DNA of 63,872 nt, the filler included, from Lenisia limosa (lineage: Eukaryota; Protista; Breviatea), in the NCBI GenBank assembly GCA_001655205.1. It is 10 parts of 10 records of this genome, joined end to end, with 100 filler letters (N's around TTAATTAATTAA, not from the genome) between each part and the next. Parts side by side here need not be neighbours in the genome. Positions count along the whole stretch, not along the records: positions 40,164 to 48,201 come from LPNZ01011588.1; 9 more parts are not named here. One strand, given 5' to 3'. The notes beneath the pieces were generated by a model. That model did not search any database, had not been told where the DNA came from, and saw only the letters and a program-made list of their open reading frames with translations. Both the position numbers and the translations under genes were made by a program. Every line of letters begins with the position of its first letter. Within the stretch, counting starts at the first letter, position 1. Positions 10,801 to 48,201 of this stretch are shown here, one piece after another.

Positions 10801-11230
10801 TATTACATTCAATACTTACCTGATAGCTGTTTCCGGTTCCAATAAGGGCTGCGTTAGCACTTCCTAACTGTTCTTGGCTTCCGGCAACGGGATTGCTGTG
10901 TTCATTAGCGCTGATAACAATATAAACAGCAAAATACAGGCCTAACTATCTCAAAAACTTACTATTTGAAAACAGTAACGGGTGCGTAGTGGATTACAGT
11001 AGATTCCGGTCCTGATTTGCCCTTAGTAGCAGATGGCTGCTTGGGAGCAGTGTATTTAAAGGAAGTAGAGGACTGCGAAGAAGTATCATCAAAGACGCTA
11101 TTGAGTCCAGCTTGTCTATACCCTCATTAAAGAAAGTTAAATTATAAACTAAATATCATAAGTTCACCCGAACTCTTAAACCGCCTTCTATTAAAAAAAA
11201 AATCTCTAAAAAAACCACTTACCCCTCCAT
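7899..11230 (-). CDS. FKBP15: FKBP15 (WAFL/FKBP133)-like: WH1-like domain plus FKBP PPIase domain (3'-partial)
   Basis: Exons give MEGQAGLNSVFDD..FKYTAPKQPS..VTVFKY; QLGSANAALIG..YQILIYRSG; VRSELYQSFYDDR; QCQVTYTGRFAD; LGDKSKVIAGWNEAILGMRKGAK|RYICVPPHLAYGEHGQGDKIPGNSTLFFEIEIVK; ALKARVAK|HGQAMAP. These match remembered FKBP15 motifs (YTAPKQP, FYDD, AKMGQPM). Confidence 0.85.
8230..8321. mobile_element. MITE family A copy (intronic in FKBP15)
   Basis: TA|GGGATTCCCTTTGTTTCGAAAAAGACT...TTTTTGAACCGAAGTGAAGCCC|TA; imperfect terminal inverted repeat. Confidence 0.7.
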
Positions 11231-11564
11231 TCTGGACAACTCTGCTGTTCAATCTAGATTCAGTAACCTTATATTCTTATATTTATTTTTTTTTCTTGAC
11301 AAAAAAAATGAAAATTTTTTGTCTAACTATACTACCCGTTCCGGACCACTTTCCTCCTTTCTCAGTTTCAGTCAGGTGTTTCTTCTACACCTCCTCAGCA
11401 CCTCCTAGTCTGTTCTCTCCTCCCTCCAGTCTAACTCCTTGCCAACTCCAGTCCTGCTCAGTCTCTCAAAACAACAAAAAAACTGGCGCACAGCTTCCTT
11501 GTCAACTTGTCGTCAGCAACATCACAACATGCACCCCACATGATATAAGTTTGAACATACACCA

Positions 11565-14456
11565 ATGTTCAATAGGCCTTCTGAAGGACATGGGCACTTC
11601 GCAATGGCTCCGCAATTTGGCTTTGGCCAAATGATGCAGCATGGTCAAAGAAATCCAGACTCCCATATGATGCAGGATGCCCACTTCAATGAAAGAATGA
11701 TGATGAGCAACAGCATGATGCCAAGCAATGACATGATGGGCAGCAATATGATGAACAATCAGATGATGAACTCGATGCCAAGCAATGACATGATGAACAT
11801 GATGAACAACAGCATGATGCCAAGCAATGACATGATGGGCAGCAATATGATGAATAGTCCGATAATGAACACCAGCATGATGAATAAGACCTCAGTGCAA
11901 CGAATGTTGAAGGGGAATCCGATCAAGAAGGACTTCCCTGAACGTTCAGCCCCTGAAAGAGAGTTTGTCGTCACAGCCCCTGTCAAAAAGACACCCCAGA
12001 AGATTGAAAGACCCAAGAATAACAAGAGTGGCAAACACTTAGGAAAGAGACGACCCCTTATTCATAACCCCATTGATAATACTGAAGTATGGGCCCTTGA
12101 GAACTTGTTTGCTGGGGTGGGGGGGGGGAGTTAACTAGTGATTTCCTTTTGCCACCACACTGACAATAATTTGATACAGTATGACTTTGACAGGTTCGCC
12201 GGGATACCATCTGAACATACTTTTGCATATACAGTGACCAGGATAAGTCTTGACCGTTTGCTATGATTTCCCAAAGAAAATCGGTCAAGACTTATCGCAT
12301 TCACTCAATGTTTTCACATTTTCACAATCCACGAACCACACTCCTTTCCTATGACTGTCAATGACTCTTCGTTTAGATGGAATGTCCATATTCAAAACAC
12401 GGTCCGCCCTCTGGTCAGCTACATTAAGATTAACAACCACCAACTTCTGGCTGATGTAAGCGTTCCATAAGGAGAGGGAAAAGGGGTTTACATGAGACTA
12501 GCCTCTTTCAAGAACCAGATTTGACCGTTTAGTTATGGAAGTCTCTGGTTGTTGAAGACCTTTTGGCCATTTTCGAGAAATCAAGAGGTTTTGCTGTAGG
12601 CATGTTGACTAGAACAGTGAACAATACATTCACCTTGAGTAGTTACAATGGTTGACCATTTCAGTTAGCTCTTGTTGAATGCATGTTCCGAGAATCTGAG
12701 TTATTCCCCGCCACTCATGCCAATGTCATTGTAGACGCCATTAATCACCACGATAGTGAGTGTTGATTGGGTTCTACTCCTTGAAAAGACCAGTTCTATT
12801 ATGTACGTTAGGCCATGACTTTCTTACTTCTCTTCTGAAGGAGAAGGCAATCAGCTGCGGCGCACAGGAAAAGGTTTGTTCTTCTTTGAGTTATTGGAAC
12901 TTGTGGAGCGATTCGAGTTTACTTCGCCCAGCTTCGTGTGATAGACTGTATGATCCTCAAATGCACGAATGTGTTCCAGTTCGGCGTGATTAAGGCTATT
13001 TTTGACAAGAACCGTGATTACTTCTACCCTGGAGAAATGGTCTGCTCTCCCCCTTTGATTATCTCACCATTTCAATTGTATATTGTCTGTACTCGCAGCT
13101 TGTCTAACTTATCCCCTTGATGAAGATTTTTAGCATGTACTACCCCTCTCATTTCAAAATAAAAATTGTAGTAGCTCTATTCTCACTTTTTTTTTTTTTT
13201 AGTACCGTGGCCGTATTTCTGAGCACTACATCANNNNNNNNNNNNNNNNNNNNNNNNNNNNNNNNNNCTATCTACACTTTCATCGACTGCTACGTTTCTC
13301 TGGCAAACCGAAACGCAGTCACAAAGATCCATGTTGTCATGCGTCAGCTGTTTGTGGTACATGACTGGGTCCCGCACAACAGTGGCGACGGCAAGTGCAT
13401 GTTTTATTGTGTGCTGGGAAGAGGAAAGTGAATAAATTGTTGAAGACAGAATACCTATTTCAGTGATACCATTCTATTTTAGTCACATTCTTTCACTAAC
13501 TCATCAAACTCACTTTCAGGCAACCTTTTCAAAATGAATGGGCCAGAGTCAGAACGGCTCTTGTCCGAAGCTCTGGATGTGGGGGGGGGGGGGNNNNNNN
13601 NNNNNNNNNNNNNNNNNNNNNNNNNNNNNNNNNNNNNNNNNNNNNNNNNNNNNNNNNNNNNNNNNNNNNNNNNNCCAAAATATACTAGATTTCTTGGAAC
13701 AAGATGTCAGCTATGTATGGGTAGATTTCTTGGAACAAGATGTCAGTATGGGTAGCCGCAGTGCTGGAGTGGAATTGACCGTTCAGATCTTAGATCGATC
13801 AACTAATGGGCCGTCTCTGTCCCCTCCACGTTCTCCAGAACGCACACACTTTATTGACACATATGGCCAAGACACCTCACATGAAGAGCTGAAGAAGCGC
13901 GAAGAGGAGAAAAAGCGGGAAGAACAGATGAAGCGTGACGCAGTTTGTGGGCTTTTTGCTCAAACTCTTTGGTTTGTGTAACCTTCAGATCTATTTCACT
14001 ATAACTGTGAAATGGTCTTCTGTTTGTGGTTTACACCCTTTTGGCAATGATCTCCTGAAAAAAACCCTGTTTTTATTATTATTATTATTGTTGTTGTTGT
14101 TTTTCTCCCCATCATGAATCATTCCTTCTTTCACCCGCCCCAGGAGAGGAAGGCAGCTCTTAACAGGATCTCCTGTGAAATCGAGGAAACGGAGCGAAGG
14201 AGAAATGAAGCTTCTCAAAAGGTAGTCCAACATTCATGATTAGGGCTTAACTTCGGTTCGAAAAAAGACTGTATTTCTCGAAAACTATCTTACCGGCCTT
14301 TTTCGAACCGAAGTGAAGCCTAATTCATGATGCTTGTTTTGTTAAACAATCTTAACACCTCTAACTCCGAAGGTTGCAGAGTTGAAAAAGGAGTGGAACA
14401 AACTCACAGACTACATCACGGACTGTGACAAACAAGTTCGAGGGTCTCCGGCTTAG
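11565..14456 (+). CDS. Multi-exon hypothetical protein with Met/Asn-rich low-complexity N-terminus and coiled-coil C-terminus
   Basis: Long first exon with SMMPSNDMMGSNMMN repeats. Later GT-AG exons include ALVECMFRESELFPATHANVIVDAINHHD, CMILKCTNVFQFGVIKAIFDKNRDYFYPGEM, ERKAALNRISCEIEE and VAELKKEWNKL..GSPA* (TAG 14454-14456). The junction after exon 1 is unresolved, so this could be two genes. Confidence 0.55.
12232..12306. mobile_element. MITE family B copy (CAGTG termini)
   Basis: TA|CAGTGACCAGGATAAGTCTTGACCG...CGGTCAAGACTTATCGCATTCACT; inverted ends. Confidence 0.65.
14243..14320. mobile_element. MITE family A copy (cleanest hairpin)
   Basis: TA|GGGCTTAACTTCGGTTCGAAAAAAG...CTTTTTCGAACCGAAGTGAAGCC|TA, located inside an intron. 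Confidence 0.8.
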
Positions 14457-14749
14457 GCTAAGGGGGTTTTGAACTTCCTCCAATTCTTCAAATGAAATCT
14501 ATCTTTTTGTCCATATCATGTTAAATATCAAAATACACACCAATGTTTTAGCTGATTCTTGTAGCTTGTCCATTTGAAGGAAAGAAAAGAATATCTTATT
14601 CAGTAATCTTCATGGTATGTATGATAAATTTTGTATTCTGTTTTACAAACCTGGTAAGTGATAAAGGCATAAACCTGAGAGCCTACAAGTACTTGAATCC
14701 AATCCCTTATTTCAGCTAGTGATCCTTATAATCCTTCGTCATATCCATA

Positions 14750-14870
14750 ATAACTCATATCCAGTGTTAACTGACCATAATACAATTCTCAATGATAGTC
14801 TTACACTCGGGATGAACCTCGTGTTCATCATTTCGACTCGAAATCATATCACTAGCGGATATGGGACAGC
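14750..14870. repeat. Dispersed repeat family H
   Basis: CTCATATCCA..CTCAATGA..ACACTCGGGATGAACC(C)TCGTGTT..ATCATATCA..GGATATGGG, shared with ~62675-62775. Confidence 0.6.
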
Positions 14871-14957
14871 ATTTATTGTAAATTACCAAGCGAAATGTTG
14901 GTGAAAGACACTCATCAAGCTAAAAAAACAGATAGCACGATAAAAAGTGAAAAAAAC

Positions 14958-16429
14958 TCAAGCCGCTCGTCGCTTTCTCGAAGACAGGACTTCACGTGTC
15001 CGGTCGGTTACGATGTTGGACGCCATCCACCCCAGGTCCGCCACTGACGACAGGTCCAGCTGATCTGCTGTCCACATTTCTGATTTCAACAGCCGCTTCA
15101 GTTGTCGGACGCTTTCCGGCTAAGATGTGAGTTTTCATCGGGCTCTCTTGCATCTTATGATATACGATAAGAGTTATTCAAGTCACATGAGAAGAGCAAA
15201 TAACTGACCTCTTCTTTGCCTGTGTCATCGAGATCATCATCTGGTTTCTTTTCCTTCTTAGAATAGTAAGTGACGGGTTGCATAAAAAGATTCCATAATA
15301 TCCTTTCATTTATATTTCAGGCTCTCTTACTTTAATAACATCATCTTGCTTCTCCTCTTTGGGCTGCAAGATATCGACAGCGATATTGCCTTCGAGGAAA
15401 AGGTCGGGGTGCCCCAGGGTGTCATCCTCTGGTGTCTCTTTCACCTCGATTCGGTCCAAGTCGTTTTCAACTAGACGAATACATGATTCCTAGGGGTGGT
15501 GAAGGATGGTGTTCAGCATCATTAATTGCGAAAACAATCGATAAAACACTTGTATATTGGGAGTATATATGACATAATCGCAACTTCCCTCCTCCCCCCA
15601 CTATTGTGGAATAGGCGGTTGTCAGAGAAGTGTCCAGTGAATGGAGCACACTGGGAAGGTTGAAATCCGTAGAGTCTGCACTAGATATATAAAGGACACA
15701 AAAAAATCAACATGAGAAAAGAGTTGAATAGATGTTCACTTGAAATTTAGAAATTTTAATTTCAGGCCATAATGAGGCGATTTACGCTATTACCCCCGTT
15801 TTGAAATGCAGTTGAGCTCAAGCTCATTCTTCGTAGCATACTTCTTTGTTTCATATCACCCCTCACCCTTGTTTAAACGCTGATTGAGGGTCCAAGAAAG
15901 CTGAAAGAGCAGAAACAAAATTCTAAACCGTAATAAAGAAATAATTTCCCAAAACATCATTGACGAAATATCATTAAATTGAGAATTTTTAAAATCTACG
16001 TTTTGAAAGGAACAATTCAAGAAACGATCCAACAATCTCAAACCCCACCTCAAATGCAAGACGCAATTGAGCCACTTCCTGAACGCTGCTCGAACGCTGC
16101 TGGGGCTGGGGTTGGGGTTGAGCTGCCTGCGCGCTTTGAGCACTTGCTACTTGCTGCTGAAGTTGCTGTTTCTGAGCTTGTTGAAGCTGCTGATGCTGCT
16201 TCATATATTGCGACTGTTGTTGCTGTTGTTGTTGCTGTTGCTGCTGCTGTTGTTGGTTGTACAACAACCTTTGTTGTGCCTGTTGCTGTTGCTGCTGCTG
16301 GTATTGGTGGTACTGTTGTTGTTGGTGCTGAGGGAGTACCTGCGGATGCTGGTGGTGAACAGATGGCCTTTGTTGAGCCATTTGAGCGGCTTGTTGCTGG
16401 TGGTGCTTCACCGCATCCATTTGGTTCAT
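14958..16429 (-). CDS. Poly-glutamine-rich hypothetical protein
   Basis: Q-rich exon (MNQMDAVKHHQQQ..EVAQLRLAFE) followed by GT-AG exons ENDLDRIEVKETPEDD.., KEKKPDDDLDD and PESVRQLKRLLKSEMWTADQL..SSRKRRAA* (TGA 14960-14958). One internal junction is unresolved. Confidence 0.6.
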
Positions 16430-16915
16430 GATGATGAGATTCCGAGAGTGCTGGAGGCAGAGGTACCAGAGGGTTTGTCCCTCTTCAGATGAAGGTCAAA
16501 TGATGGTTTATGGTTGTGGGGGGGGGGGACACACGAGAACGGAGNNNNNNNNNNNNNNNNNNNNNNNNNNNNNNNNNNNNNNNNNNNNNNNNNNNNNNNN
16601 NNNNNNNNNNNNNNNNNNNNNNNTGAGAAGAAGGGGTGAAGACTGCAAGAAAGAGGCTGCTTGGAGGCTGCTTGGCAGAAAAAAAGGCGAAAGAGGTGAC
16701 AAGCCGGGCCGGCTTTTACTTGGTAACCGTGCATGCACCTTCCTTCCCTCACAATCAACATTGGAACACAGTTGCAACACAGATCAAACATTCATTCCGA
16801 ATAACCATGCATGAATCCCCGTATGCAACAACCACGAACCAGCCCTGATATAAAATAAAAACTTGCTGTCAATGACAAGGGGGGCACCTGCCATGCCAAT
16901 TATCATATCATTATA

Positions 16916-18469
16916 ATGAACATTGGCCATCCACCACCCCTTGCAGTCAAGGTTATTGAAGTAGATTGGTATGTTGACGAGGATGTGCATGGCAAATGCC
17001 ATCCTGTTCTGCGGCTGTTTGGGCCACTCTCTTCGGGGCAGTCGTGTTGCCTCCACGTCCATAAGGTTGGAAGATTACACTCTCATTCATTTCAGCTCTT
17101 TCCCTACCTCCACATCCTCGCCCAAGCCCCCAATAACGCTTGCGACAGCAATTTCATTTCAGGTTTGAATTACTTTTTGCAATGGTAACGGGCTGTAGAG
17201 AAGCAGGGTTACATTTGGGATTGCTGCGAGCGGTTTCTGAGCCAAAGCAACAAGGGACCGTTTCTTCACAGGTAGCCTCCTTTTGTTGCGTCACTTTCCA
17301 GAGTCTCATGCGAGGTGTTAACACCAATCTATGGCTTCCACAGCGAACCAAAACTGGTTTTTAGAATTGAACTGTTTGTGACACATATACATCTAAAACT
17401 GCTTAGTTTGAAGCCGGGCTTGTTAACGGTATTGCTGAACGGGTTTCGAGACGGTAAAGTTACGGCCACTTCAGTTGAGGTAAATTCCTGAAGTCAAAGT
17501 AAATTTTTAGGTCTTTTCTGGACATATTCCCTTTGTCTTACAGGCCATGGTAAGAATGTTAATTATTTCCTTATTCTATCAGATTCATATGAACATAGTT
17601 GGAATGGGAGAGGCGTCTTTCTGCAACCCCGTTTTTAGGTAGGTGGGTTGATCCCGTCTAACAGTTTGAAAATGGGGAAAGCTCAACTTATTTTGTGTAA
17701 ACTTCTATCAGAAGGGGTTGTGTTGACGATAGGAATAAAAGAGGTTGCAAGTATCTGGGTGGAGTTTAAGAACTTTTAATGTTGCTATCACACAGTCTCA
17801 TATATTCAGAGGTCAGCTTGTTTCTACGACCAACTTACTGAAAAGAAGGCCATACTGTTTGATGGGTGTCAATATAAAAATAATGGGAGAGGGTCATAAA
17901 ATACAATAAAGCCAAACATCTCTGTACACCTCACACAGCAAGTGGTTCAACATGGGTTGCAAGGGGCAGTCACGTCGGACCAAAACTGGGCGTTGTCAAT
18001 GAAGAAAAGAGAAAGTCGGACCGAAGTTGAGGCTGACATCAACGTAGATGGTGAGCCTGTTTTGTGCTTATTGTCTAGACGTTCTCAATCAATACCAGGT
18101 CGAGGCTGCTGATGTGGACTCCATGGCTGACGATGCCCAACTCATTGCTACTTTACAACCGCTTTGGGAAGAAGAGAAAAAAAGGAAGCAAGCTGGGGGG
18201 AGCGATTCTCCGATTCCCGCAGGCACACCTGTATTCACCCAACAGGTAAATAAACTCATTTCACCGATTAATATCATCTTCATTGGGCGTCCAAAAACAA
18301 GGGGTTGATGTGAAACTGTCAAAAGATAAATGCTTTTATTTGCATAATTAACCTCGAAATAACAAGAGGACATTAACCTAGCAAAGCCTAACATTTAAGC
18401 TGATTGACCGATTGCGCCAGCGTGATGCCAAGAAACGCCCCGATCTGAACAGTCCCCTATCACAACTGG
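16916..18469 (+). CDS. REV3: DNA polymerase zeta catalytic subunit, N-terminal part (3'-partial)
   Basis: LAVKVIEVDWY..PVLRLFGPLSSGQSCCLHVHK|LFPYL; VLTPIYGFHSEPKLVFRIEL; GHIPFVLQAM|IHMNIVGM..VFR; RESRTEVEADINVD|DVLNQ; LQPLWEEEKKR. These are REV3 N-terminal motifs in the expected order. Confidence 0.88.
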
Positions 18470-18510
18470 GTATGCTCTGGATTTAGTCCCCTATCACAAC
18501 TGGGTATGCT

Positions 18511-18610
18511 NNNNNNNNNNNNNNNNNNNNNNNNNNNNNNNNNNNNNNNNNNNNTTAATTAATTAANNNNNNNNNNNNNNNNNNNNNNNNNNNNNNNNNN
18601 NNNNNNNNNN
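18511..18610. other. Artificial scaffold linker
   Basis: 44N + TTAATTAATTAA (18555-18566) + 44N. Confidence 0.98.
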
Positions 18611-21600
18611 TGGCGAACGCAAGGACCACAACGCCGGATAGTACGCCGCCACCAACAACGTCAAGACCAAATATGGTGTCCGGGTACCTGGGGATCATGC
18701 ATAGTAAAGATATGTTTGGCTGTAGTGTTTACTTCTTTTACGTAAAAAAAGGGTCAAAATATGAGATTTCTGTAAAATAAAAAGTGATCCCTTAATCCAG
18801 CAAAAACTACCAACCACCCACCTTTTGAATCCGAAATATCGGGCTTGAGCTCCCTCACTAAGGAGTCAGATGAGTCGTTCCAGCAGTTGCCAGCATGTCG
18901 ACAGTGACCCCCCCCCCCCNNNNNNNNNNNNNNNNNNNNNNNNNNNNNNNNNNNNNNNNNNNNNNNNNNNNNNNNNNNNNNNNNNNNNNNNNNNNNNNNN
19001 NNNNNNNNNNNNNNNNNNNNNNNNNNNNNNNNNTGGCGAAGCTCAGTAAGAAGGCTGGCGTCTGTGGAAATGAGAGCACAGCAGCCGTGACCTACCCATC
19101 CAAGGTTGAATGTGACGAAGAAGAAAAGGTAGATGTAGCGAATGACGGTGACTCGAGCCACAGCCACTTGGAGGAGAACGAGAGCCATAGCCTGCGGAGT
19201 TATGTGAATTCAATCACGGAAAGCAGGGATCATTTCAGGACGGCCATACCCAGGGCATGATACGGATGGCGATTCTCAGTATGAGGCGCGAAACCTTCAA
19301 TATGAACGCCGGCAGTGGTGGTGGCGGCTTGTACCCCTTGGAGAACTCTTGTCTGGGAGGTTAGATGACCTGGTCTTGCAAACGCTTACTTGAAGACATG
19401 CGCCTGGCTGGTGGACATGAAGAACATGACCGCATATGGCAACAGCTGCAGCAATAGGTCTGAAGGGTCCAATCTAAAACGTCATCACTGGACCAGTGTT
19501 CTTGTGCTCGGTGCCCCACAAACTCTTCAAGGCCAACTTCCTTCCTCGTCACCACCCAATCGTCCAAACGAAGGAATGCCACAAGCCCTACTCTGTAAAG
19601 ACGGTATCCAATGCTGGCGTCACTGTGGGCAGAAAGAGAGAAAATGATATGTTAAACTCCACGATTTTTGGATATTTTGGAAGACAAACGCAAGATATCT
19701 CATTTGTACGCCAATCCTCATACATGAGCGGAAGGCAGAAAACTGGAAGAAGTAAAGCGACGTCAGAGCAAGCGCAGCGTAGAGCACCACCAGGGGCCAG
19801 AAAACCGCAATTGTCGTCTACAATGTTGGAGACAAGTGGAAAAGTAATTGGAACAGAGTGTAATATCCTTTTTTACTAGAGTGTCTTCATGATTAGTTAT
19901 CAGGAGAGAGCACCATTGGAAACCTAGTGTTTGGCTGTGCTTACCCTTGGTTTCATTGTGACTTGGTGAATGAGGAAGAAGAGATATGTGAATCCCAAAA
20001 AGACAACTCGCATCACTTGAAGGGGAAGAATAACACCTATTCAGTCAGCAAAGTCTTTGGGACATTGTAGCATACCCATGAGTATGAAGGCCGCATAGCA
20101 CCCTGGGAGAAGAGCCATTGTGAGTATCCGGCCGGTGGTAAGGCCAATAGTCGTGATGATGGGGGGAAGAACCGTGTCCAACGCGGTGTTGATTGCCACT
20201 GAGTTGGTTAAGTCATTAGGTGGAGTTAATTCACACTCCCCCCTGTAAAACGAATGGTATTGATATGCTGAAAATGTGAAAAACAATTAGAATACGAAGT
20301 TAGCCCAAGACAAGCGCATGATCTGTCGAATCTTCCATGTCACTTTATTCAATGCCTAAATTCGCCTGGCTTACTTGGGGTTCCGTAGCCGGCTTCAGGG
20401 TCGTTGACTGCAGTGTGAAAAAATAAAACAGAGTTCAAGTTTGAGTCATTAAAAGTTAAGGGGAAGAAGAGAGGACTGGTAAAAATGAAACAAACTCAAA
20501 GTCAAAAGTGGGTATACCTGGTAGCCTCCTCTTATAGAGCCTCAGTCTGTCCTGGAACACAGCAAAGACAATAACAAGAATGTGGGGGTACGCCACTCTG
20601 AGAAGACTCCAATCATAATGAACACTACTTGGTGAGAACAGCACAAATGTGTCAATGAAAAACACAATTTACCCCCCCCCCTCCAACCCGATATTTTCAG
20701 CCATGCTTGAAGTGCCCCAGTCAACAAAGATGTCGAACCGGGCCACGTAAACAGTGGTGAGTGCCATGATGGGGTACAATACTGCCAGCGACCAGCCCTT
20801 TCGTCCCGCTGATGGGATTGCTACAGGGTCAAACTTGGACCGATTTGCGAATCTCTAACAAACCAGCAAAAATGACAAAGAGCAAAATGTAACCCGCGTT
20901 GAGAAGTGTGGGTCTGTACATGGCTGCGTAGAAAATAGACACCAGAGTCAGCAAATAGGCCTAAAAAATCAGTCCTGTGCTTTGTGGTGTCGGCACGCAC
21001 ATTGTCTTTTGTTTTAGTGAGAAGCGCCAAGCCCAGAACAGCCGCCATTCTCCACCCGCTCTTCGGCCAGTTCATAACGGCTAATACGTCAAACAGCATA
21101 GGGGGGGGGGGGNNNNNNNNNNNNNNNNNNNNNNNNNNNNNNNNNNNNNNNNNNNNNNNNNNNNNNNNNNNCCACAAATTCAATCCAAGCACTGTCATAA
21201 CGCTAGTGAAATAGTACCCCCCTCACCCTCGAGAGTAGAGCCAGCCTTCTTGAAGCCATTAGCCTCGGTCTTGAGTCGGACAAACAGTGTGAGCAAAATG
21301 GCGGCAAGAGCGGGAAGAGCCATCCAGAGTCCTGAGAAGTCTGGGTTGTAGAGTCCCGAGTCATGGTTGCTGAGTTTCTAACAGGTTACAGCCACCTCCA
21401 AGCTAACTAGAGCCACCTCCAAGCTAACCCCATTATCAGGCCAGTCTTCATACTGTATGACGATGACGTAGATCAACTGCCCCAAAACAACGATGCCTAA
21501 AACGGTCATTCGCGTTCCGAGAAAGATTGTATCTTTCTTCCTTAATTACTTGATACAATTACATTCTTGTTTTTAAAAAAGATGCGCTCAACCTCTGCCC

Positions 21601-40163: not shown

Positions 40164-41324
40164 ACATATTTATCTCTTGTCTTACAGGTTCCTTCAGTTG
40201 ACCTTTTTTGTACAAACATTGAGAAGAACATAGTATGGGGTAATTGTTGGAACCAAATTTTGAAAATAAATATTATTGCTAGTAATTACATATATATTAC
40301 ATGTAATATAGGTTGCTGTTTAAAACCGCGAACATGATTAAAACCGCTAACAAGCCAAAATTCGACATAAATCGCTTCAATAACACCCGTTTTAGTGTGA
40401 AATTCGGCAGTTTTGAGTACTAGACTATCAATAACATCAAAAAAAAGAAATTTTGAGCAAAAAGAAGAAAAAAATGAGGTGATAAAAAAATCGAAAAAAG
40501 ATCTTTTGATCAGAATCGAATCCGGCCGGTCACCCGGTTTCTTTTACGCGAAAATATTTTTTGAAACCCCCCTCTTTCAGAATAATAGCATTTTGAGCCT
40601 ATTAAAGTGCCCCACTATAGAAATGCAGATTTTTAAGGAGAATTCGAATCTGAAGTCCATTTTTGGAGAAAATGTGATTTTGAGGTATTTAAGTCAACTT
40701 TTGTAACGGTTTTTTCAAGAATTTTTCTTGTTCAGTCTCTATAATGGAGAGCCATTGGACAAATTAGACGTCTGATTAAAGTATATGCTGCGTCAACAAC
40801 CCATTTACCGTTCTGGAATGTCACAAAAGGTAAGAGTCAAATTCGCTTGATTTATTAACATCTTCTATCATATTTTCGCCCATTTATCGGTAATTTACGC
40901 TCACGTATCTACTTAAATGTCTCTAGGTTACTCAAGAGTGGAAAAAAAATCAAATTTGATGGTGCAAGAACGTCTTCACTTTATCGCAGGGACAATTCTA
41001 GGCNNNNNNNNNNTGTACCATGAAGGTGGTATTTTGCATGTATGTTGATACCCCTGCCTATTCTTATGAATAAAATCCTGTATAAAGGAGTGTTCCGGGC
41101 GATAATTTGCAAAAAATGCGAAAGAGGCATAAATAAGGAGCGTATTGACTCAAAAATAGAAATAAAAGCCTCCTTTTTGTTCGCGGTTTTAACTATAAAT
41201 ACAATATTTCGGGCTTGGTATGGTTTCAGTTTTTTAAATAATGAACATCATGTAATATTTCATTCACCTCCAATAATAAAATTAAGATATGATACATGAT
41301 TCACAACATTTTAGAGGACAATTT

Positions 41325-44300
41325 TCAATTGTAGAGAGAATGGTTAATTAAAGCCGGAAGAGGTTCAATGATAGTACCTAAGGATTCCTCAATCTCAAAT
41401 AGAGCAATTCTGTCCTGAAAAGTGATTAAATTTATTGCTAAACCAATCAAATAATAAGAGTAAAAAACAAACTTGTCCATATCTACCAGAACGTCCAATG
41501 CGGTGTAAATATGAATCAGCAGCTTCAGGTAAATCAAAATTTATAACAACATTCACAGAAGGAATGTCAATCCCGCGAGTGAATAAATCGGTTGAGACAA
41601 GAACTCTTGAATCCCCATTACGAAAGTCATGAAACACCCGATTTCTTTCGTTCTAAAAGGTTATGAGTAGCTGAGCATTAAAAAATAGCTTTCAAGATTT
41701 TTGAAAATATTAATACAAAAGTGTGCATATGCATAACACATGCAGGAATTGTCATGATTTGTTAACGCTGCTGGGTTTGTTCTTAAGAAGGCTGCTGAGA
41801 CATACTGAAAGCTCTAATAAGAAAGCTGATGTTTGTGTCGATATCAATATACTAAAACATCTTTATCACGCCTTGTTCGTCACTCGGAACCTCCTTAAAA
41901 CAACCGCGGAAATCCTTGAATGCCATATCCCTCGGGAACATACGATGAAATATGAGAAATGTCATATTGTGAGTGATCTCAATCAAAAAGGTCGAAATTT
42001 GTCATATAAAAAACACTTCTTACTACAAAATTCAGTGAAGCAGAGCCAAGAAGATATCCAATATTATGTTTCAGTTTTTATAGTAAAGGCGACCTTAAAG
42101 AAGTGAAGCTTTTTGCTAATTATATATATGCGTAATTATGTAATAGTATTACTTTTCTGTTCTTTCTAAAAGGTGAAGTCAGGTTTTGTTGCTACTTAAA
42201 AAGAATTCTACAAAATGTAACTAATGTAAAATGATGTAGTGTTTATAGTTTTCCCCCCCCTTCCTTTCTGCTTTCAGCCTTAACATTCAGAGAGCTTCTT
42301 TTGAGGATGATTGACTGGAGCTTTTCAAGGATCTTCTAAAAGTTGCTGGGTTCCTCCTTTACTCTTCTCTTCTTTGTTGTTCTCTGTAGTGCTTAGCGCT
42401 ATAAACAAAATAAACACAAATAATCATGATTTCAGGAGTTCAGTTGATCTCAACTTCCTCCTCAACTGATCGATCACGCTAAAGACCTGTCCTTTGGGGA
42501 GTATCATGAATGGGTTTTAGAATGAATTGAAGTGTTTTTGTACGTTTTTGTGTGTCAACTTTGTCTGAGAAATTGGGGTTTATGAACATTCCTTTCTGCC
42601 ATTTGTGCAGCCGAAAGGCTGCCATTTTCTTCTCTCTGTCTGAACAACGCAAAATATGACTATTCTCTAAAACAAATGGGGTTCAATGAGTCAAAATATG
42701 TCATATATATCAGATAGTATATCCTATTTCCGCGAGTAAATAAATATGATAATTGTCATATTTTATGCTCCCACGGGTAAAAAAAGAAGAATGATAAATG
42801 TCATATTTTTCCATTATATTCATCATATATATATATGACATTCCGATGACGTGTCACCCCATATCCCCCATCCTTCTTACCCCCTTTATCCCCTTTGTCC
42901 CGTAAATGATGTTTTATGCTTCTAATAGTTCGATCAGAGCGACAAATATGATTTTGTGAAAAAAAAATGACCCCAAGACGAAAAATATGACTTTTCTGCT
43001 TTCTAAAGTTAAACGATGGTTGTCATTAGATCCTTAAGATATGGTTTTCCTCATTGGATCCTCTATGGAGTTTTTTTTGGAGAAAGTTCTTGTTGAACAA
43101 GAAGGTTGTTAGTATTTACCATGCTGATTGACTTTATTAGGTTCTTTACTTGTCAAAACGAAAGATTTCTTCTCTTATTGTTGATGACATCCGCCCCACA
43201 TCTGTCAAGCGCTGCGAGCCTGGTCGTCATTTGAATGTGGCGGGGGGNNNNNNNNNNNNNNNNNNNNNNNNNNNNNNNNNNNNNNNNNNNNNNNNNNNNN
43301 NNNNNNNNNNNNNNNGTTTCTGAATTGGTGAACCAAAAAAAGACACGTTAGAACACATAATAATAATGGGGGTGAGGATATCTAATGAATGAGGGAGGTA
43401 CATAGCAAATATCTATTTGCTCTTCCGTTTCTGAATTCACTCCGCCAGCAATATGACCAACAAAAGAAGTTCGTTTGGAAAAGCATTTTTTCGGCCAATT
43501 TCACAGAAAATAGCGTATGAGGTTGTTTTGCTGACTAGAGTTATTGATTTTTCTTTGTCGTTTAAATCTTGAAGGTTGTTCTTAACCCCTCCATTGCGGA
43601 AGTTTGCCAAAACAACTGGAAAATGAGCGTTGAGAAGGTGAACGCGAAGGCAAAAGGTAGTAGGAGTACCGGATCCAGACAATTGATTCTTTCACTATCT
43701 CCCTTTTATTCGTTCACTACCCTTTATTCGTTCACTACCCCCGTTTATTGGCATTTCTGTAGGCGATTGGGAGTCCAATGGTTCTATCCCTTTTTTTAAA
43801 GATAAGAAATTACATTACCTTCACGGGTCTTCAATCAAAAATTTGGTGACGTCGATCAGGGACATTGCTGAAGAAGCGGGCGGTGATGGTTAATCCAGCA
43901 CATTCCAAGATCGTGTCCCTGTAAGGGGGGGACTTGTGTGTTTAATTACAATGATACTTTACTTTTTACTCTTTAATCGGCAATATTGACTATGAACACC
44001 ACCTTACACCGACAAACACGGCGCTGACAGATGTGCATTGTGCACTACCTAATTGACCAATCAATGATCAACGCTCAAATTGCCTACTCTGACTTCCTCC
44101 CCTCTGCTGGACGCCCAGCTACTGACCGCAAGAGCTTACACATGCGCGTCACCGAGGCCCTTATTGGCATGTCCCCCTTCTCAACCACCAACAGCAGTAT
44201 TCCCTCACCCAAGAAGGTTGGAATTGGTTCCTGATGCTAAGATTGTGTGATTAATTTCACATTATTTTGAGAAAGTGTTATTATGAATGATTTAATATTA

Positions 44301-47300
44301 CTTTGACTCAAGCAAAGCTCCGATAAACTATCGATTATTTTCGTTATTTTATCTGTCTTTTCAAGGTCAAATGAACATACATAAATTTTAGGATACTATG
44401 AATTTGTCCTTTGTTTGATCGTATTTATTCACTTGTTTTCCCATGTTAACAGCTCAGACAGCAGCACTCCTCAACATCCTTCAATTCGTGCTCTTGTTGG
44501 TGATGTCGCTAAGCACTTCACCGCTGTGGCCATTGCAGTTCTGGAAAGTTGGCCTCCAAGAAAATCTGGACCAATCTATTCTGTGCGGGTTGTGGTGTTT
44601 TTCTTTGTCCATCTTGTTCTTACAATGTTCATTCTTTAATGTTCAAGGCTTGATGTGGTTTGTGCTTATGGTAATTAGGGTGTTTTGATGTGATTAACAT
44701 TTAAGTTTGGAAATGTATGTTTTTTTTAAGGAAATTGGGCGGTTGTTTTTTATTTGATTAAAGAAGGGTTTCAAATGGGAAAGTTGTATCGGATAGTAGA
44801 TGAATAAACGAAGAATAGGCCTTCCTTTAAGCGATTTATGTATATTAATCAATACTGTATTGATTATGACTCAATAATGACTCAAGTCGATTTTAAGAAA
44901 GGAGTACAGAGGCAAAAGTGGCGTAAATCACATTCAATATTACGCGGAATACTTCAGATATTCGAGAACTTTCCCTCAAAAGGTCAAAGTGCAGGCTGTT
45001 TTATCTTTTACAGAAGATAGTCGCTGAATGTAGTGCTGATTGGTTCCTGCGCCAGTTTCCAGTATAATATGTACTGCTAAAAGTCTTGTGCAAATACCAA
45101 AAACATGATCAGATTGTCCTCAATAAACGCCATTATTTGCAGCAATTGTCCAGAATAACGTGCTTCGGATATACGAGACAACTTCCCCATTTGAAATCCT
45201 GCTTTTATCATGAGTTTTTATCGCTTAATACCAGAAAAGCACTTGGGTTAACTTAGTGGGAGATGACAAGACAAAAAAGAAAGAACAAAAAAAAAAGAGC
45301 AGAGACAAAAACAAAAAAGAATATGATATTTATATATATATAGATGTTAATGTTTGGGGTGAAATGTACTGATGTCATGTCACTAATCTGGTGATCCAAA
45401 ACTCAAGTATTTGAAACTACCAAGTAAATGGTAACCTAGATCATATGAACTTATACAGTGACCGAGATAACAACAAACTTATTTCGCAAATCGGTCAAGA
45501 TATATCGCGTCACTGAAATTCTCATTAGCTGATTTTTTTGTGCACTTTATCACTCAATTGAGCCTAATGATAGCAAAAAACCTGCATCTTTTGTCAGCGT
45601 AGCCAAGGATCACGATAAGTTCTTGAAATCTGACGCTTAATGTCATTTGTAGAAGTAAGCAACCTATTTGAGTTAAAAAGAAGGAATCATTAGTTAACCA
45701 ACCTCAAGAAGTTTTGAAAACTTCGACAAAGGCCCTTTTAGAAGGGGGGTTGGGAACACAACTTTCAGGTATCACGAGGTTGGCTTGGTAATTCATCATT
45801 TTATCATGACAAGAAACTAATAAAGTCAAATAGAAAATCAGCAGCTCAAACAAACTTTCGTCTTTCAGTGTCATCAACCTTCGGTTTTTCTACTAAAAAA
45901 CATCTAAGCATCCTTGAATCACTTCACAAGCGTTAAGATTTGAAAAAAAGAGTGAAAAAATAAAAATGTTAATAAATGTAGTCTAACTTATAGCAGTAGT
46001 TACATATGTAGGCACCCTTTTAAAGATCTTTTAAAAAATGCGTAAAAACCTCTCTAGAAAATGCTGAAAAGATGCATGTTAAGTAAATAACAATAAAGTT
46101 AAGGAAATAGTTGCTCTTTGCAAGACCAGTTTAGCTGGCCAAACCTGAACATATTGAACATCTTCTTGNNNNNNNNNNNNNNNNNNNNNNNNNNNNNNNN
46201 NNNNNNNNNNNNNNNNNNNNNNNNNNCATTTCTCTTAAAATATGACTTCCCATTTTCCGTTGGGCATATGATTGCTCATATACCCTCGGCACAAGTTCCT
46301 AGGGAATGGCATGGGGCATTTTCTTGGTTGTTTGCGGAGGTTCCTCGGTTCTCACTCGGCTATGACTCCTTCGTCCTTAAACCAACCTCGAAAATTCACT
46401 CCGGCCTCCCTCGGAAACAACATTTCATTTTATACGATATACTATGTCCATATTTCATTTATTATATAATACAGTTCTCATTACAATATGATTTTTTTTA
46501 CAATTTCAAAAAAAACGCCAAAAATACCCCATCAGCCGACCATCTTATTATATTAAATTGAGGGATAAAACAAAATAAGACATATGATATTAGGTTACCT
46601 TAAGATGGTCCCTTGGTCAAAATGAATTGAAGTCTTGTCTTCCACTGTTTTTTAGATATTATTTTCAAATAATCATTTAGATTTTTATATTAATAATATT
46701 TATAGGAGAAACCTCGACCAATAATAATTACATCAATTCACAAAATAAAAAAATAACCCATATTAACTCTCATACTTAACAAAAGAAAACAACAACCTGG
46801 GGCATCCTTGAATGAATGAAGAAACAAGAATATCCAATTTCAGTGATTTTTCTTGCCAACAGCTCAACCCGATTGACAGAATTACAAAAAATTATCATCT
46901 GATTAATTTGTAACATATCAAAAAAAAGTGAAAAACTTTTTTAAAAAGCGAATGAAGACAAAAAATTTTATATTGTTCTTCAACAAAAGAATAAAATTGA
47001 CTAACCCCACTTAATGTCAGTTTAGGCATCATGTTAACTTCTTTAGCGTTCTGAACAAATCTATTATCAGTAATTCGAAATAAACAAAGAGATTTTGGAT
47101 TGGATTGATGAAGGGAATGTGGCAGAAAATAAATAGGTTTGGTGATGAGCTAAAAGCAGAGATATCTTTTGACATGTACTAAAAAACTCTTCAGTCAGTA
47201 AACGATCAGCCAAATTAGAATTAAAGTCAACCTCATCAAGAACAAGAGAATTAATACATGATAAAGAAATCACTCCCCTTTCCATCAGATCCAAAAGTCT

Positions 47301-47766
47301 TCCAGGAGTTCCGATGATAAGGTTAACATTACCACATAATCTGATCACGTCATCCTTTGTTAAAACCTGAAACTACTCTCACAGAAGTTCCTCCAAATGT
47401 TGATACAACTGCAAGGTCTAAGTATTTAGAAAAAGATTTAGCAATATGGGAAACTTGAAGAGCTAGCTCCCTTGTTGGAACAACAACAACAGCAATACGC
47501 CCATCAGCTGAAAGTAAACTTTCTAAAATTGGAATTAAATATGCTCCTGTTTTCCCTGTTCCATTTTTGGACCTTCCCAAAATATCCACTCCTGACAACG
47601 CAGATGGAATGCAAACATTACAACAAACAGTAAACCATGCCTCTTGAATTGGAGTTGGTGACACAAAGCCAGCTTCATGAAGCCCAAGGATTAACTTATG
47701 ATTGAGATGAAAATCTGAAAAGAAAACTGTGGACACACAATTAACATCTTCAGTTTGAGCCCTCAT
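41325..47766 (-). CDS. DDX6: DEAD-box RNA helicase DDX6/Dhh1/Me31B, apparently complete, 8 exons
   Basis: Exons 47766-47636, 47611-47377, 47354-47232, 47210-47086, 47060-46937, 46913-46797, 41652-41473 and 41447-41325 give [129 protein letters not shown]. Confidence 0.95.
41448..41472 (-). other. DDX6 intron 7, 25 nt, GT-TG (frame-shifting if retained)
   Basis: gtttgttttttactcttattatttg lies between RYGQ and IGLAINL. Confidence 0.88.
43141..44653 (+). pseudogene. Decayed piggyBac-type transposase inside DDX6 intron 6 (opposite strand)
   Basis: Motifs in order: PGRHLNV; [10 protein letters not shown]; [25 protein letters not shown]; C-terminal Cys-rich [27 protein letters not shown]. Contains a stop and a frameshift; TTAA/TIR ends not found. 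Confidence 0.72.
45456..45515. mobile_element. MITE family B copy (in DDX6 intron 6)
   Basis: TA|CAGTGACCGAGATAA...CGGTCAAGATATATCGCGTCACTG. Confidence 0.65.
46914..46936 (-). other. DDX6 intron 5, 23 nt, GT-TG (frame-shifting if retained)
   Basis: gtttttcacttttttttgatatg lies between SLFKK and LQINQ. Confidence 0.88.
47211..47231 (-). other. DDX6 intron 3, 21 nt, GT-TG, splits the DEAD motif
   Basis: gttgactttaattctaatttg lies between GAT GAG and GCT GAT. Confidence 0.9.
47612..47635 (-). other. DDX6 intron 1, 24 nt, GT-TG
   Basis: gtttactgtttgttgtaatgtttg; removal restores IQEA-C-IPSAL. Confidence 0.8.
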
Positions 47767-48201
47767 TACCACAACTGAACACAAGAACACAAAAACAATC
47801 CACTTATGCTAGTAGATTCAAAGTAGCTTATTCCTCAGTGTTCCAGCTGCACCTGGCACAGGGTGACGGTCTTTGTATAAACCCCCCAGGTGCCGGTATA
47901 ATGACCATTTTTTTTGCTCTTATTATCTCTTTTTACTACCTTTATCACGTCGAGGACTTCACGGTTTTAAATATGTGTTTTAAAGTAGTCTATAACTGCC
48001 CCCAAATTTGCCCAATTAGAAAAAGAGAAAAGTTGTAGGAAGTTAACCGTATTTTTCTGACGTTGTGTAAAAACACAGAAGACAAAGAAATGACGAAGGT
48101 TGGTGTTCTTTGGATTGTTTAAGTTTATATAGAACAATTATCAGAAAGGATGGCGAGGGAGAGGCCTTTTGATACTTGCGAAGTGCTGTTTACGAACTCC
48201 A

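Follow-up and report, generated by a model that had tools for sequence, protein, structure and literature searches.

Probable spliceosomal micro-introns with TG 3′ ends in the DDX6/Dhh1 gene of the breviate Lenisia limosa

The window analysed here is a stretch of 63,872 nucleotides (nt) from the genome of the anaerobic breviate Lenisia limosa (GCA_001655205.1), in which ten parts are joined by filler. The part at positions 40164-48201 (LPNZ01011588.1) holds a single recognisable gene, a helicase of the DDX6/Dhh1/Me31B/CGH-1 type on the minus strand. Next to one large intron, this gene is interrupted by six segments of only 21-25 nt. These segments are very probably genuine U2-type spliceosomal micro-introns that are removed from the DDX6/Dhh1 pre-mRNA, with four of the six ending in TG. 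The AG at the 3′ end of introns belongs to the most invariant signals of eukaryotic gene expression, and TG, perhaps also GG, would serve as the sole acceptor for most of the shortest introns of this free-living protist. It is for the shortest introns that the AG rule appears to be relaxed, seemingly up to a length of about 25 nt and with the terminal G kept.

Micro-introns of the DDX6/Dhh1 gene and their removal

All six micro-introns lie on the minus strand and start with GT. Introns 1 (47635-47612, 24 nt), 3 (47231-47211, 21 nt, with the end CTAATTTG), 5 (46936-46914, 23 nt) and 7 (41472-41448, 25 nt) end in TG, while introns 2 (47376-47355, 22 nt) and 4 (47085-47061, 25 nt) end in AG. Introns 1 and 3 are in frame; introns 5 and 7 would shift the frame if kept. 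An earlier interpretation of this DNA, in the following called the sequence-only reading, had proposed the coordinates and end letters of all six segments, including the two GT-AG sister introns, and all of them were reproduced; the frameshifts it expected from retention of the 23- and 25-nt introns were borne out in the spliced model. The donors read GTTTAC, GTAGTT, GTTGAC, GTTTAT, GTTTTT and GTTTGT. A GT donor was present in 7 of 7 introns of the DDX6 gene and in 19 of 19 introns modelled on L003, a part of a second Lenisia contig described below, and every one of these introns ended in G. The AG expected at the 3′ end of U2-type introns was missing from four of the six DDX6 micro-introns and from two introns of an eEFSec-like gene on L003, one of which ends in TG and one in GG.

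None of the four TG introns contains an AG. The first AG downstream of their ends closes 10, 15, 20 and 22 nt within the following exon, so that a tandem TG/AG acceptor of the human type was rejected. When the junctions were moved by -4 to +4 positions, none of the four became a GT..AG intron, in agreement with the sequence-only reading.

Removal of the segments can be deduced from the conservation of the protein. A phmmer search of solved structures with the stop-free stretch of exon 3, the 21 nt of intron 3 and exon 4 revealed a gap of exactly seven residues against CGH-1 of C. elegans and human p54/DDX6, with LVLDE on one side of it and ADRLL on the other. The 21-nt segment therefore interrupts the DEAD motif (DE|AD), as had been proposed. 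Retention of intron 1 would add eight residues (WFTVCCNV) behind PIQEA, where the alignment with the homologue P0128 shows a gap of eight columns. The coincidence of GT with the start of all six homology-forced excisions has a chance probability of about (1/16)^6, which rises only to about 4e-5 when each of them is granted three shifts, and is therefore not explained by chance. Judged from the sequence, the gene model is forced by homology, with every junction fixed without gaps, because the seven-residue gap is exact, the alignment with homologues runs from end to end and GT is found at all six excisions.

A transcript-derived protein was obtained from a profile search in which a distant homologue and four window-encoded pieces were aligned. 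The third match, P0152 (385 aa), is the EukProt entry EP01086_Lenisia_limosa_P010619 (TRINITY_DN350_c0_g4_i1.p1, open reading frame (ORF) type complete), which originates from a de novo RNA-seq assembly with Trinity and TransDecoder; its neighbours in the search carry the names DDX6 and DHH1. P0152 and the spliced model were identical in 385 of 385 residues. The segments are therefore removed in RNA, and the mature DDX6 message lacks all seven of them. The sequence-only reading had called the removal constitutive, which it may be. In a search of protein representatives, the only near-identical match was an intron-retaining genomic ORF (P0001, exons 1-2).

Shares of sampled 31-mers were compared between a polyA metatranscriptomic run of 2016 (X1) and a DNA run (X2). 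Across 46780-47800, X1 contained a share of 0.69, where 0.715 is expected with all five introns spliced out and 1.0 without splicing. Over exons 7-8 the share was 0.62, with expectations of 0.815 for spliced and 1.0 for retained; the value below expectation probably reflects incomplete RNA coverage, and the pattern is not that of a retained intron. In X2 the share was 1.00 in both regions. Thus, the segments were found in genomic DNA, as seen in the DNA contigs, and were absent from mature mRNA, as seen in P0152 and the k-mer shares.

The complete gene extends over 41325..47766 on the minus strand, with the start codon ATG at 47766-47764 and the stop codon TGA at 41327-41325. Excision of the seven segments leaves eight exons, which together form an uninterrupted reading frame of 385 codons followed by the TGA. 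Exons 1 (47636..47766), 2 (47377..47611) and 5 (46937..47060) were placed by the spliced model and the identity with P0152, exons 3 (47232..47354, ending in VLDE) and 4 (47086..47210, beginning with ADRLL) by the spliced model and phmmer. Exon 7 (41473..41652), which encodes Helicase_C, was supported by Pfam and the spliced model, and exons 6 (46797..46913) and 8 (41325..41447, including the TGA) by the spliced model. The gene product matched both PF00270 (DEAD) and PF00271 (Helicase_C), and its translation contained the motifs Q, I, Ia, II (DEAD), III (SAT) and VI (HRIGRSGR). The best solved relatives in phmmer were CGH-1, p54/DDX6 and Dhh1. Residues 2-384 of the model shared 54-55% identity with full-length DDX6-type proteins, with two one-residue gaps in all and none at any junction. 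These matches place the Lenisia gene among the DEAD-box helicases of the DDX6/Dhh1/Me31B/CGH-1 subfamily. At positions 40164-48201, scans for Rfam families and tRNAs gave no matches.

Intron length and the choice of the 3′ splice site

Via a repeat-encoded ORF of the large DDX6 intron, another contig of Lenisia was reached, NODE_194 (38 kb, 35x; examined as L003, L005 and L006). Most of its 38 kb showed no recognisable domains, and three recognisable genes were found. The first, an eEFSec/SelB-like gene (L003 1787 onward), gave a clean open translation through its first nine introns. These are an intron of 53 nt with an AG end (L003 1983-2035), an intron of 22 nt (GTTGTTAAATTTGCCTAATTGG) with the apparent ends GT..GG (2182-2203), a GT..TG intron of 22 nt (2303-2324), an intron of 23 nt with an AG end (2451-2473) and five more of 31, 30, 36, 73 and 39 nt, all ending in AG. 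The exon ahead of the GG junction ends at residue 149 of the human eEFSec chain, and residues 2-32 encoded by the following exon align to residues 151-181; exactly 22 nt must therefore go at 2182-2203, an intron which by this alignment appears to end in GG. The alternative choice of a 24-nt GT..AG intron at this site, using the AG directly after the GG, breaks the frame. The GT..TG intron at 2303-2324 is one that we take to be real from the frame logic, the open translation and the human eEFSec sequence; a PDB search with the exon behind it (exon 4) returned no match. Human eEFSec was the best solved match of L003 1787-3110 and beyond (E = 4e-14 for one exon). The presence of an eEFSec/SelB-like selenocysteine elongation factor in Lenisia implies selenoprotein synthesis in a breviate.

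The second gene (L003 ~9050-7160, minus strand) encodes a Vps34-like PI3-kinase. Its ten introns, 29-43 nt long, are GT..AG without exception, and its translation is open and conserved. The third, a LOG-like gene (L003 5531-6250, plus strand), has three introns of 39-50 nt that were read as GT..AG by eye and were left out of the length tally. Intron size differs strongly by gene, with 21-25 nt in DDX6 and about 30 nt in the Vps34-like gene.

Nine introns had a length of 25 nt or less, and five of them ended in TG, one in GG and three in AG. AG was the end of all 20 modelled introns of at least 29 nt, which came from the Vps34-like and eEFSec-like genes and the 5.1-kb intron of DDX6. The association of non-AG ends with short length (6/9 versus 0/20) had a Fisher p of 1.8e-4, or 1e-3 without the GG case. 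As far as gene models can tell, this small sample shows that non-AG ends are not peculiar to one gene and track extreme shortness. The sequence-only reading had proposed that the spliceosome of this organism routinely accepts TG for micro-introns. This part stood for DDX6, where P0152 supports it, and gained a second case in the eEFSec-like gene; its range seems to have an upper limit near 25 nt.

The short introns have a common anatomy. The T content of the micro-introns was 36-68%, and 45-68% in those without AG. All six non-AG introns start with GTT, and five of the six end in A-N3-G, with an A at -5 (ATTTG three times, ATATG and ATTGG); in the sixth the last A is at -7. In several micro-introns, motifs similar to CTAAT or TTGAT (yTrAy-like) were seen that stop 3-4 nt short of the junction. 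Branch-like motifs of the longer introns were located by eye 9-18 nt upstream of the AG. The A at -5 in the non-AG introns may act as a branch-point ruler.

A mechanism can be proposed on this basis. If an intron is no longer than about 25 nt, no more than 4-7 nt would separate its branch adenosine from the 3′ end, and the 3′ cut would be fixed mainly by geometry or by the distance to that adenosine. In the second catalytic step, the last G of the intron would still pair with its first G, a contact that is established from structures of the spliceosomal C* and P complexes. Position -2, normally an A, would be dispensable in the shortest introns, while in introns of at least 29 nt AG would always be used, as in ordinary 3′ splice-site selection.

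The origin of the micro-introns may be sought in longer introns. At the phase-0 position DE|AD, the DDX6 gene of another eukaryote (L004 725-786, JGI soil metagenome) carries a GT..AG intron of 62 nt (GTATGT..CTAG). On account of this shared position, which was examined at DE|AD only, the 21-nt intron can be argued to be a shrunken ordinary intron. It is a matter of speculation that the TTTG end represents the usual TTTAG minus its A, which would fit an erosion of signals during intron shrinkage. The dependence of non-AG ends on intron length suggests the same route, in which extreme shrinkage of introns erodes their splice signals.

Whether these introns form a class throughout the genome of Lenisia, and perhaps of breviates, is an even bet in our estimate. 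Members of such a class would be 25 nt long or shorter, would have their 3′ end set by the A-N3-G distance and would need only the terminal G. Under this genome-wide reading, the major spliceosome would act here without AG recognition, possibly through an altered or lost U2AF35 or altered contacts of Prp8, Slu7 or Prp18. Gene finders that follow the GT-AG rule would then miss over half of the shortest introns.

Alternative explanations

Several points weigh against the removal of the segments as GT..TG introns or against its generalization. The support for removal is at the level of a protein and of k-mer shares, and no RNA contig of X1 was placed on the DDX6 exons, although filtered records leave holes in that collection. 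The RNA evidence probably comes from one data set, as the EukProt assembly and X1 likely belong to the same study. A shift by -1 converts intron 5 to AG..AT and intron 7 to AG..TT; the codon changes (AAA to AAG and CAA to CAG, respectively) are synonymous and leave the protein unchanged. For the GG case, the co-linear alternatives are AG..TG, or TG..AG with V in place of S. The intron census covers three further genes on one contig and is homology-based outside DDX6, and the branch-point and ruler mechanism was derived purely from sequence.

The first alternative that follows from these points, and an improbable one, is that the true boundaries are shifted and that the donors are non-GT sequences. 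Intron 1 would then be TG..TT or GG..TT and intron 3 GG..TT or TT..GG, with introns 5 and 7 in the forms named above. The shift test indicated that other boundaries leave the mRNA of introns 1 and 3 unchanged, and for introns 5 and 7 the protein remains the same; the evidence at the protein level is compatible with each of these forms. GT..TG is nevertheless the only reading common to all four introns, and it alone keeps the GT donor shared by the 29 introns examined. No shifted alternative restores an AG, and the non-AG acceptors therefore stand either way.

The remaining alternatives bear on the DNA of the locus. A contig of 6914 nt (L001; ENA assembly, 36x), which was reached by look-up of the ORF P0001 spanning exons 1-2, was 100% identical to positions 47969-46227, 46168-43316 and 43247-41021 of the window. 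It bridges both gaps of the large intron, so that the two halves of the gene are contiguous and no coding frame crosses a gap; a DNA contig of X2 also crosses the gap at 43248 and is 30 letters shorter there. The window, L001 and the X2 contigs agreed by 100% on the DNA of the locus at about 36-40x. Over 41340-47339, X2 contained neither variant letters nor DNA joints that skip introns.

With these data it is very doubtful, more so than a shift of boundaries, that the transcript stems from another copy of DDX6, canonical or intronless, and that the gene described here has fallen silent or is in decay. The assembly is fragmentary and the transcript is tied to the locus by protein identity only, which leaves some room for such a copy. 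The identity of 385 of 385 residues and the intact state of all exons speak against it, as does the absence of variant letters and exon-joining contigs in the interval mentioned. The DNA depth of the exons, about 40x, was that of a single-copy sequence like its flanks, and an exact-sequence look-up placed P0001 on one contig only. A canonical DDX6 elsewhere, which the sequence-only reading had named as fatal to its own proposal, was not seen in these data. Moreover, a second gene has the same kind of intron.

An excision at the DNA level in transcribing nuclei, in the manner of internal eliminated sequences (IES), is a formal possibility, since the sequenced DNA and the expressed template could differ; no direct point favours it and we hold it to be very unlikely. 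DNA contigs of full depth carry the segments, and no joint in X2 lacks them. GT starts, T-rich bodies and the shared DE|AD position are spliceosomal traits, TA-type ends are missing, and nuclear dimorphism is not known from breviates. Errors of base calling or assembly that turned AG into TG have a negligible probability: all DNA evidence may stem from the same read set, yet such errors would have to occur at four separate sites here and at two in another gene, three assemblies agree at about 36-40x without alternative letters, and with A at -2 three of the four introns would still hold no other AG. Finally, introns of the U12 type were rejected, as the six donors do not correspond to [AG]TATCCTT, the 5′ motif that accompanies a TCCTTAAC-like branch site in such introns.

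Comparison with known introns, and other features of the locus

In human U2-dependent introns, TG 3′ splice sites are rare alternatives to a regular AG and have been described in 36 genes (Szafranski et al. 2007, PMC2374985), which agrees with the statement in the sequence-only reading that TG acceptors are rare and mainly alternative sites near an AG. The Lenisia introns resemble these sites in the GT donor and the TG end, and the human case demonstrates that the major spliceosome can perform the second step on TG. They differ in that TG is the sole usable site in Lenisia and is found in 5-6 of the 9 introns that do not exceed 25 nt.

Ultra-short introns with GT..AG ends have been reported in myxobolid Myxozoa and in Dicyema (PMC13644364, PMC6543705); a 2026 survey of ultra-short introns, based on annotation with BRAKER3, found AG at the 3′ end (PMC13644364). 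The Lenisia introns share with those of such lineages a length within 15-27 nt, reduced motifs and, shortly before the 3′ end, a conserved A as putative branch point. Ultra-short introns are also present in ciliates (Stentor, Paramecium) and in the nucleomorph of Bigelowiella. BRAKER3, the source of the animal annotations, probably models canonical sites only. Unlike in these lineages, most of the shortest introns in Lenisia, a member of the unrelated Breviatea, lack AG.

Abundant non-canonical introns are known from Fritillaria borealis and Oikopleura (AG-AC, GA-AG and others), as non-conventional introns from euglenids, and with GC or GA donors from dinoflagellates. The likeness would consist in deviations from GT-AG across a whole organism, with which standard gene finders cannot cope. 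Those introns are of ordinary length, however, and are altered mainly at the donor or at both ends. In Lenisia, by contrast, the GT donor is kept, variation in the acceptor is limited to position -2, and the effect goes with extreme shortness of the intron. U12-type AT-AC introns have non-AG 3′ ends as well and are removed by a spliceosome, but they are not this short and are marked by a conserved branch site and a long 5′ motif, likewise conserved; no Lenisia intron has such a donor. Nothing relevant on introns or splice sites of Lenisia or other breviates was found in the literature searched, a scope that did not include the original genome paper.

If the reading of these segments as TG-ending micro-introns is true, Lenisia offers a natural system for the requirements of the second splicing step and for the question how a 3′ site is found with the branch point 4-7 nt away. 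The consequences for annotation would be considerable. Gene finders limited to GT-AG and GC-AG introns would keep the in-frame introns of 21 and 24 nt, thereby adding 7-8 residues to motifs such as DEAD, and would otherwise break frames at the introns of 22, 23 and 25 nt. Proteomes, BUSCO scores and claims of gene loss would then be biased in breviates, possibly also in other lineages with ultra-short introns.

The large intron of the DDX6 gene, the sixth of seven, is a GT..AG intron at 41653..46796 on the minus strand. It measures 5144 nt as written and about 5109 nt in the gap-free L001. The gap at 46169..46226 is written as 58 N and has a real length of 53 nt (L001 1744-1796), the one at 43248..43315 as 68 N with 38 real nt (L001 4650-4687). 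Besides the two gaps, the intron contains repeats and the remnant of a transposase. The ORF at 44031-44234 on the plus strand resembled clusters with the piggyBac-type domain DDE_Tnp_1_7 by protein-language features (score 0.94-0.96), and two further ORFs on the same strand, 43569-43799 and 44415-44639, are its neighbours; Pfam detected no domain in the ORFs of this intron. Repeats have enlarged the intron, and a decayed transposon likely swelled it to 5.1 kb. The DNA depth in X2, generally about 40x, rose to 150-600x at 41900-43200, where many repeat-type joints were found. The only RNA contig placed on the stretch examined (41880-42248, minus strand, depth 3) lies within this high-depth region and probably represents a repeat or transposon that is transcribed. 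A short way downstream of the gene, another 10 N (41003-41012), the third such run, look like a scaffold joint, because L001 stops at 41021.

On the second contig, sets of ORFs of 215, 74 and 180 aa recurred two or three times in L005 and L006 (NODE_194 ~11000-20000), which points to a gene family or to tandem repetition. Stops under the standard table occur in some of the called products, e.g. L005 19116-19589; the gene caller of the collection therefore used another code there.

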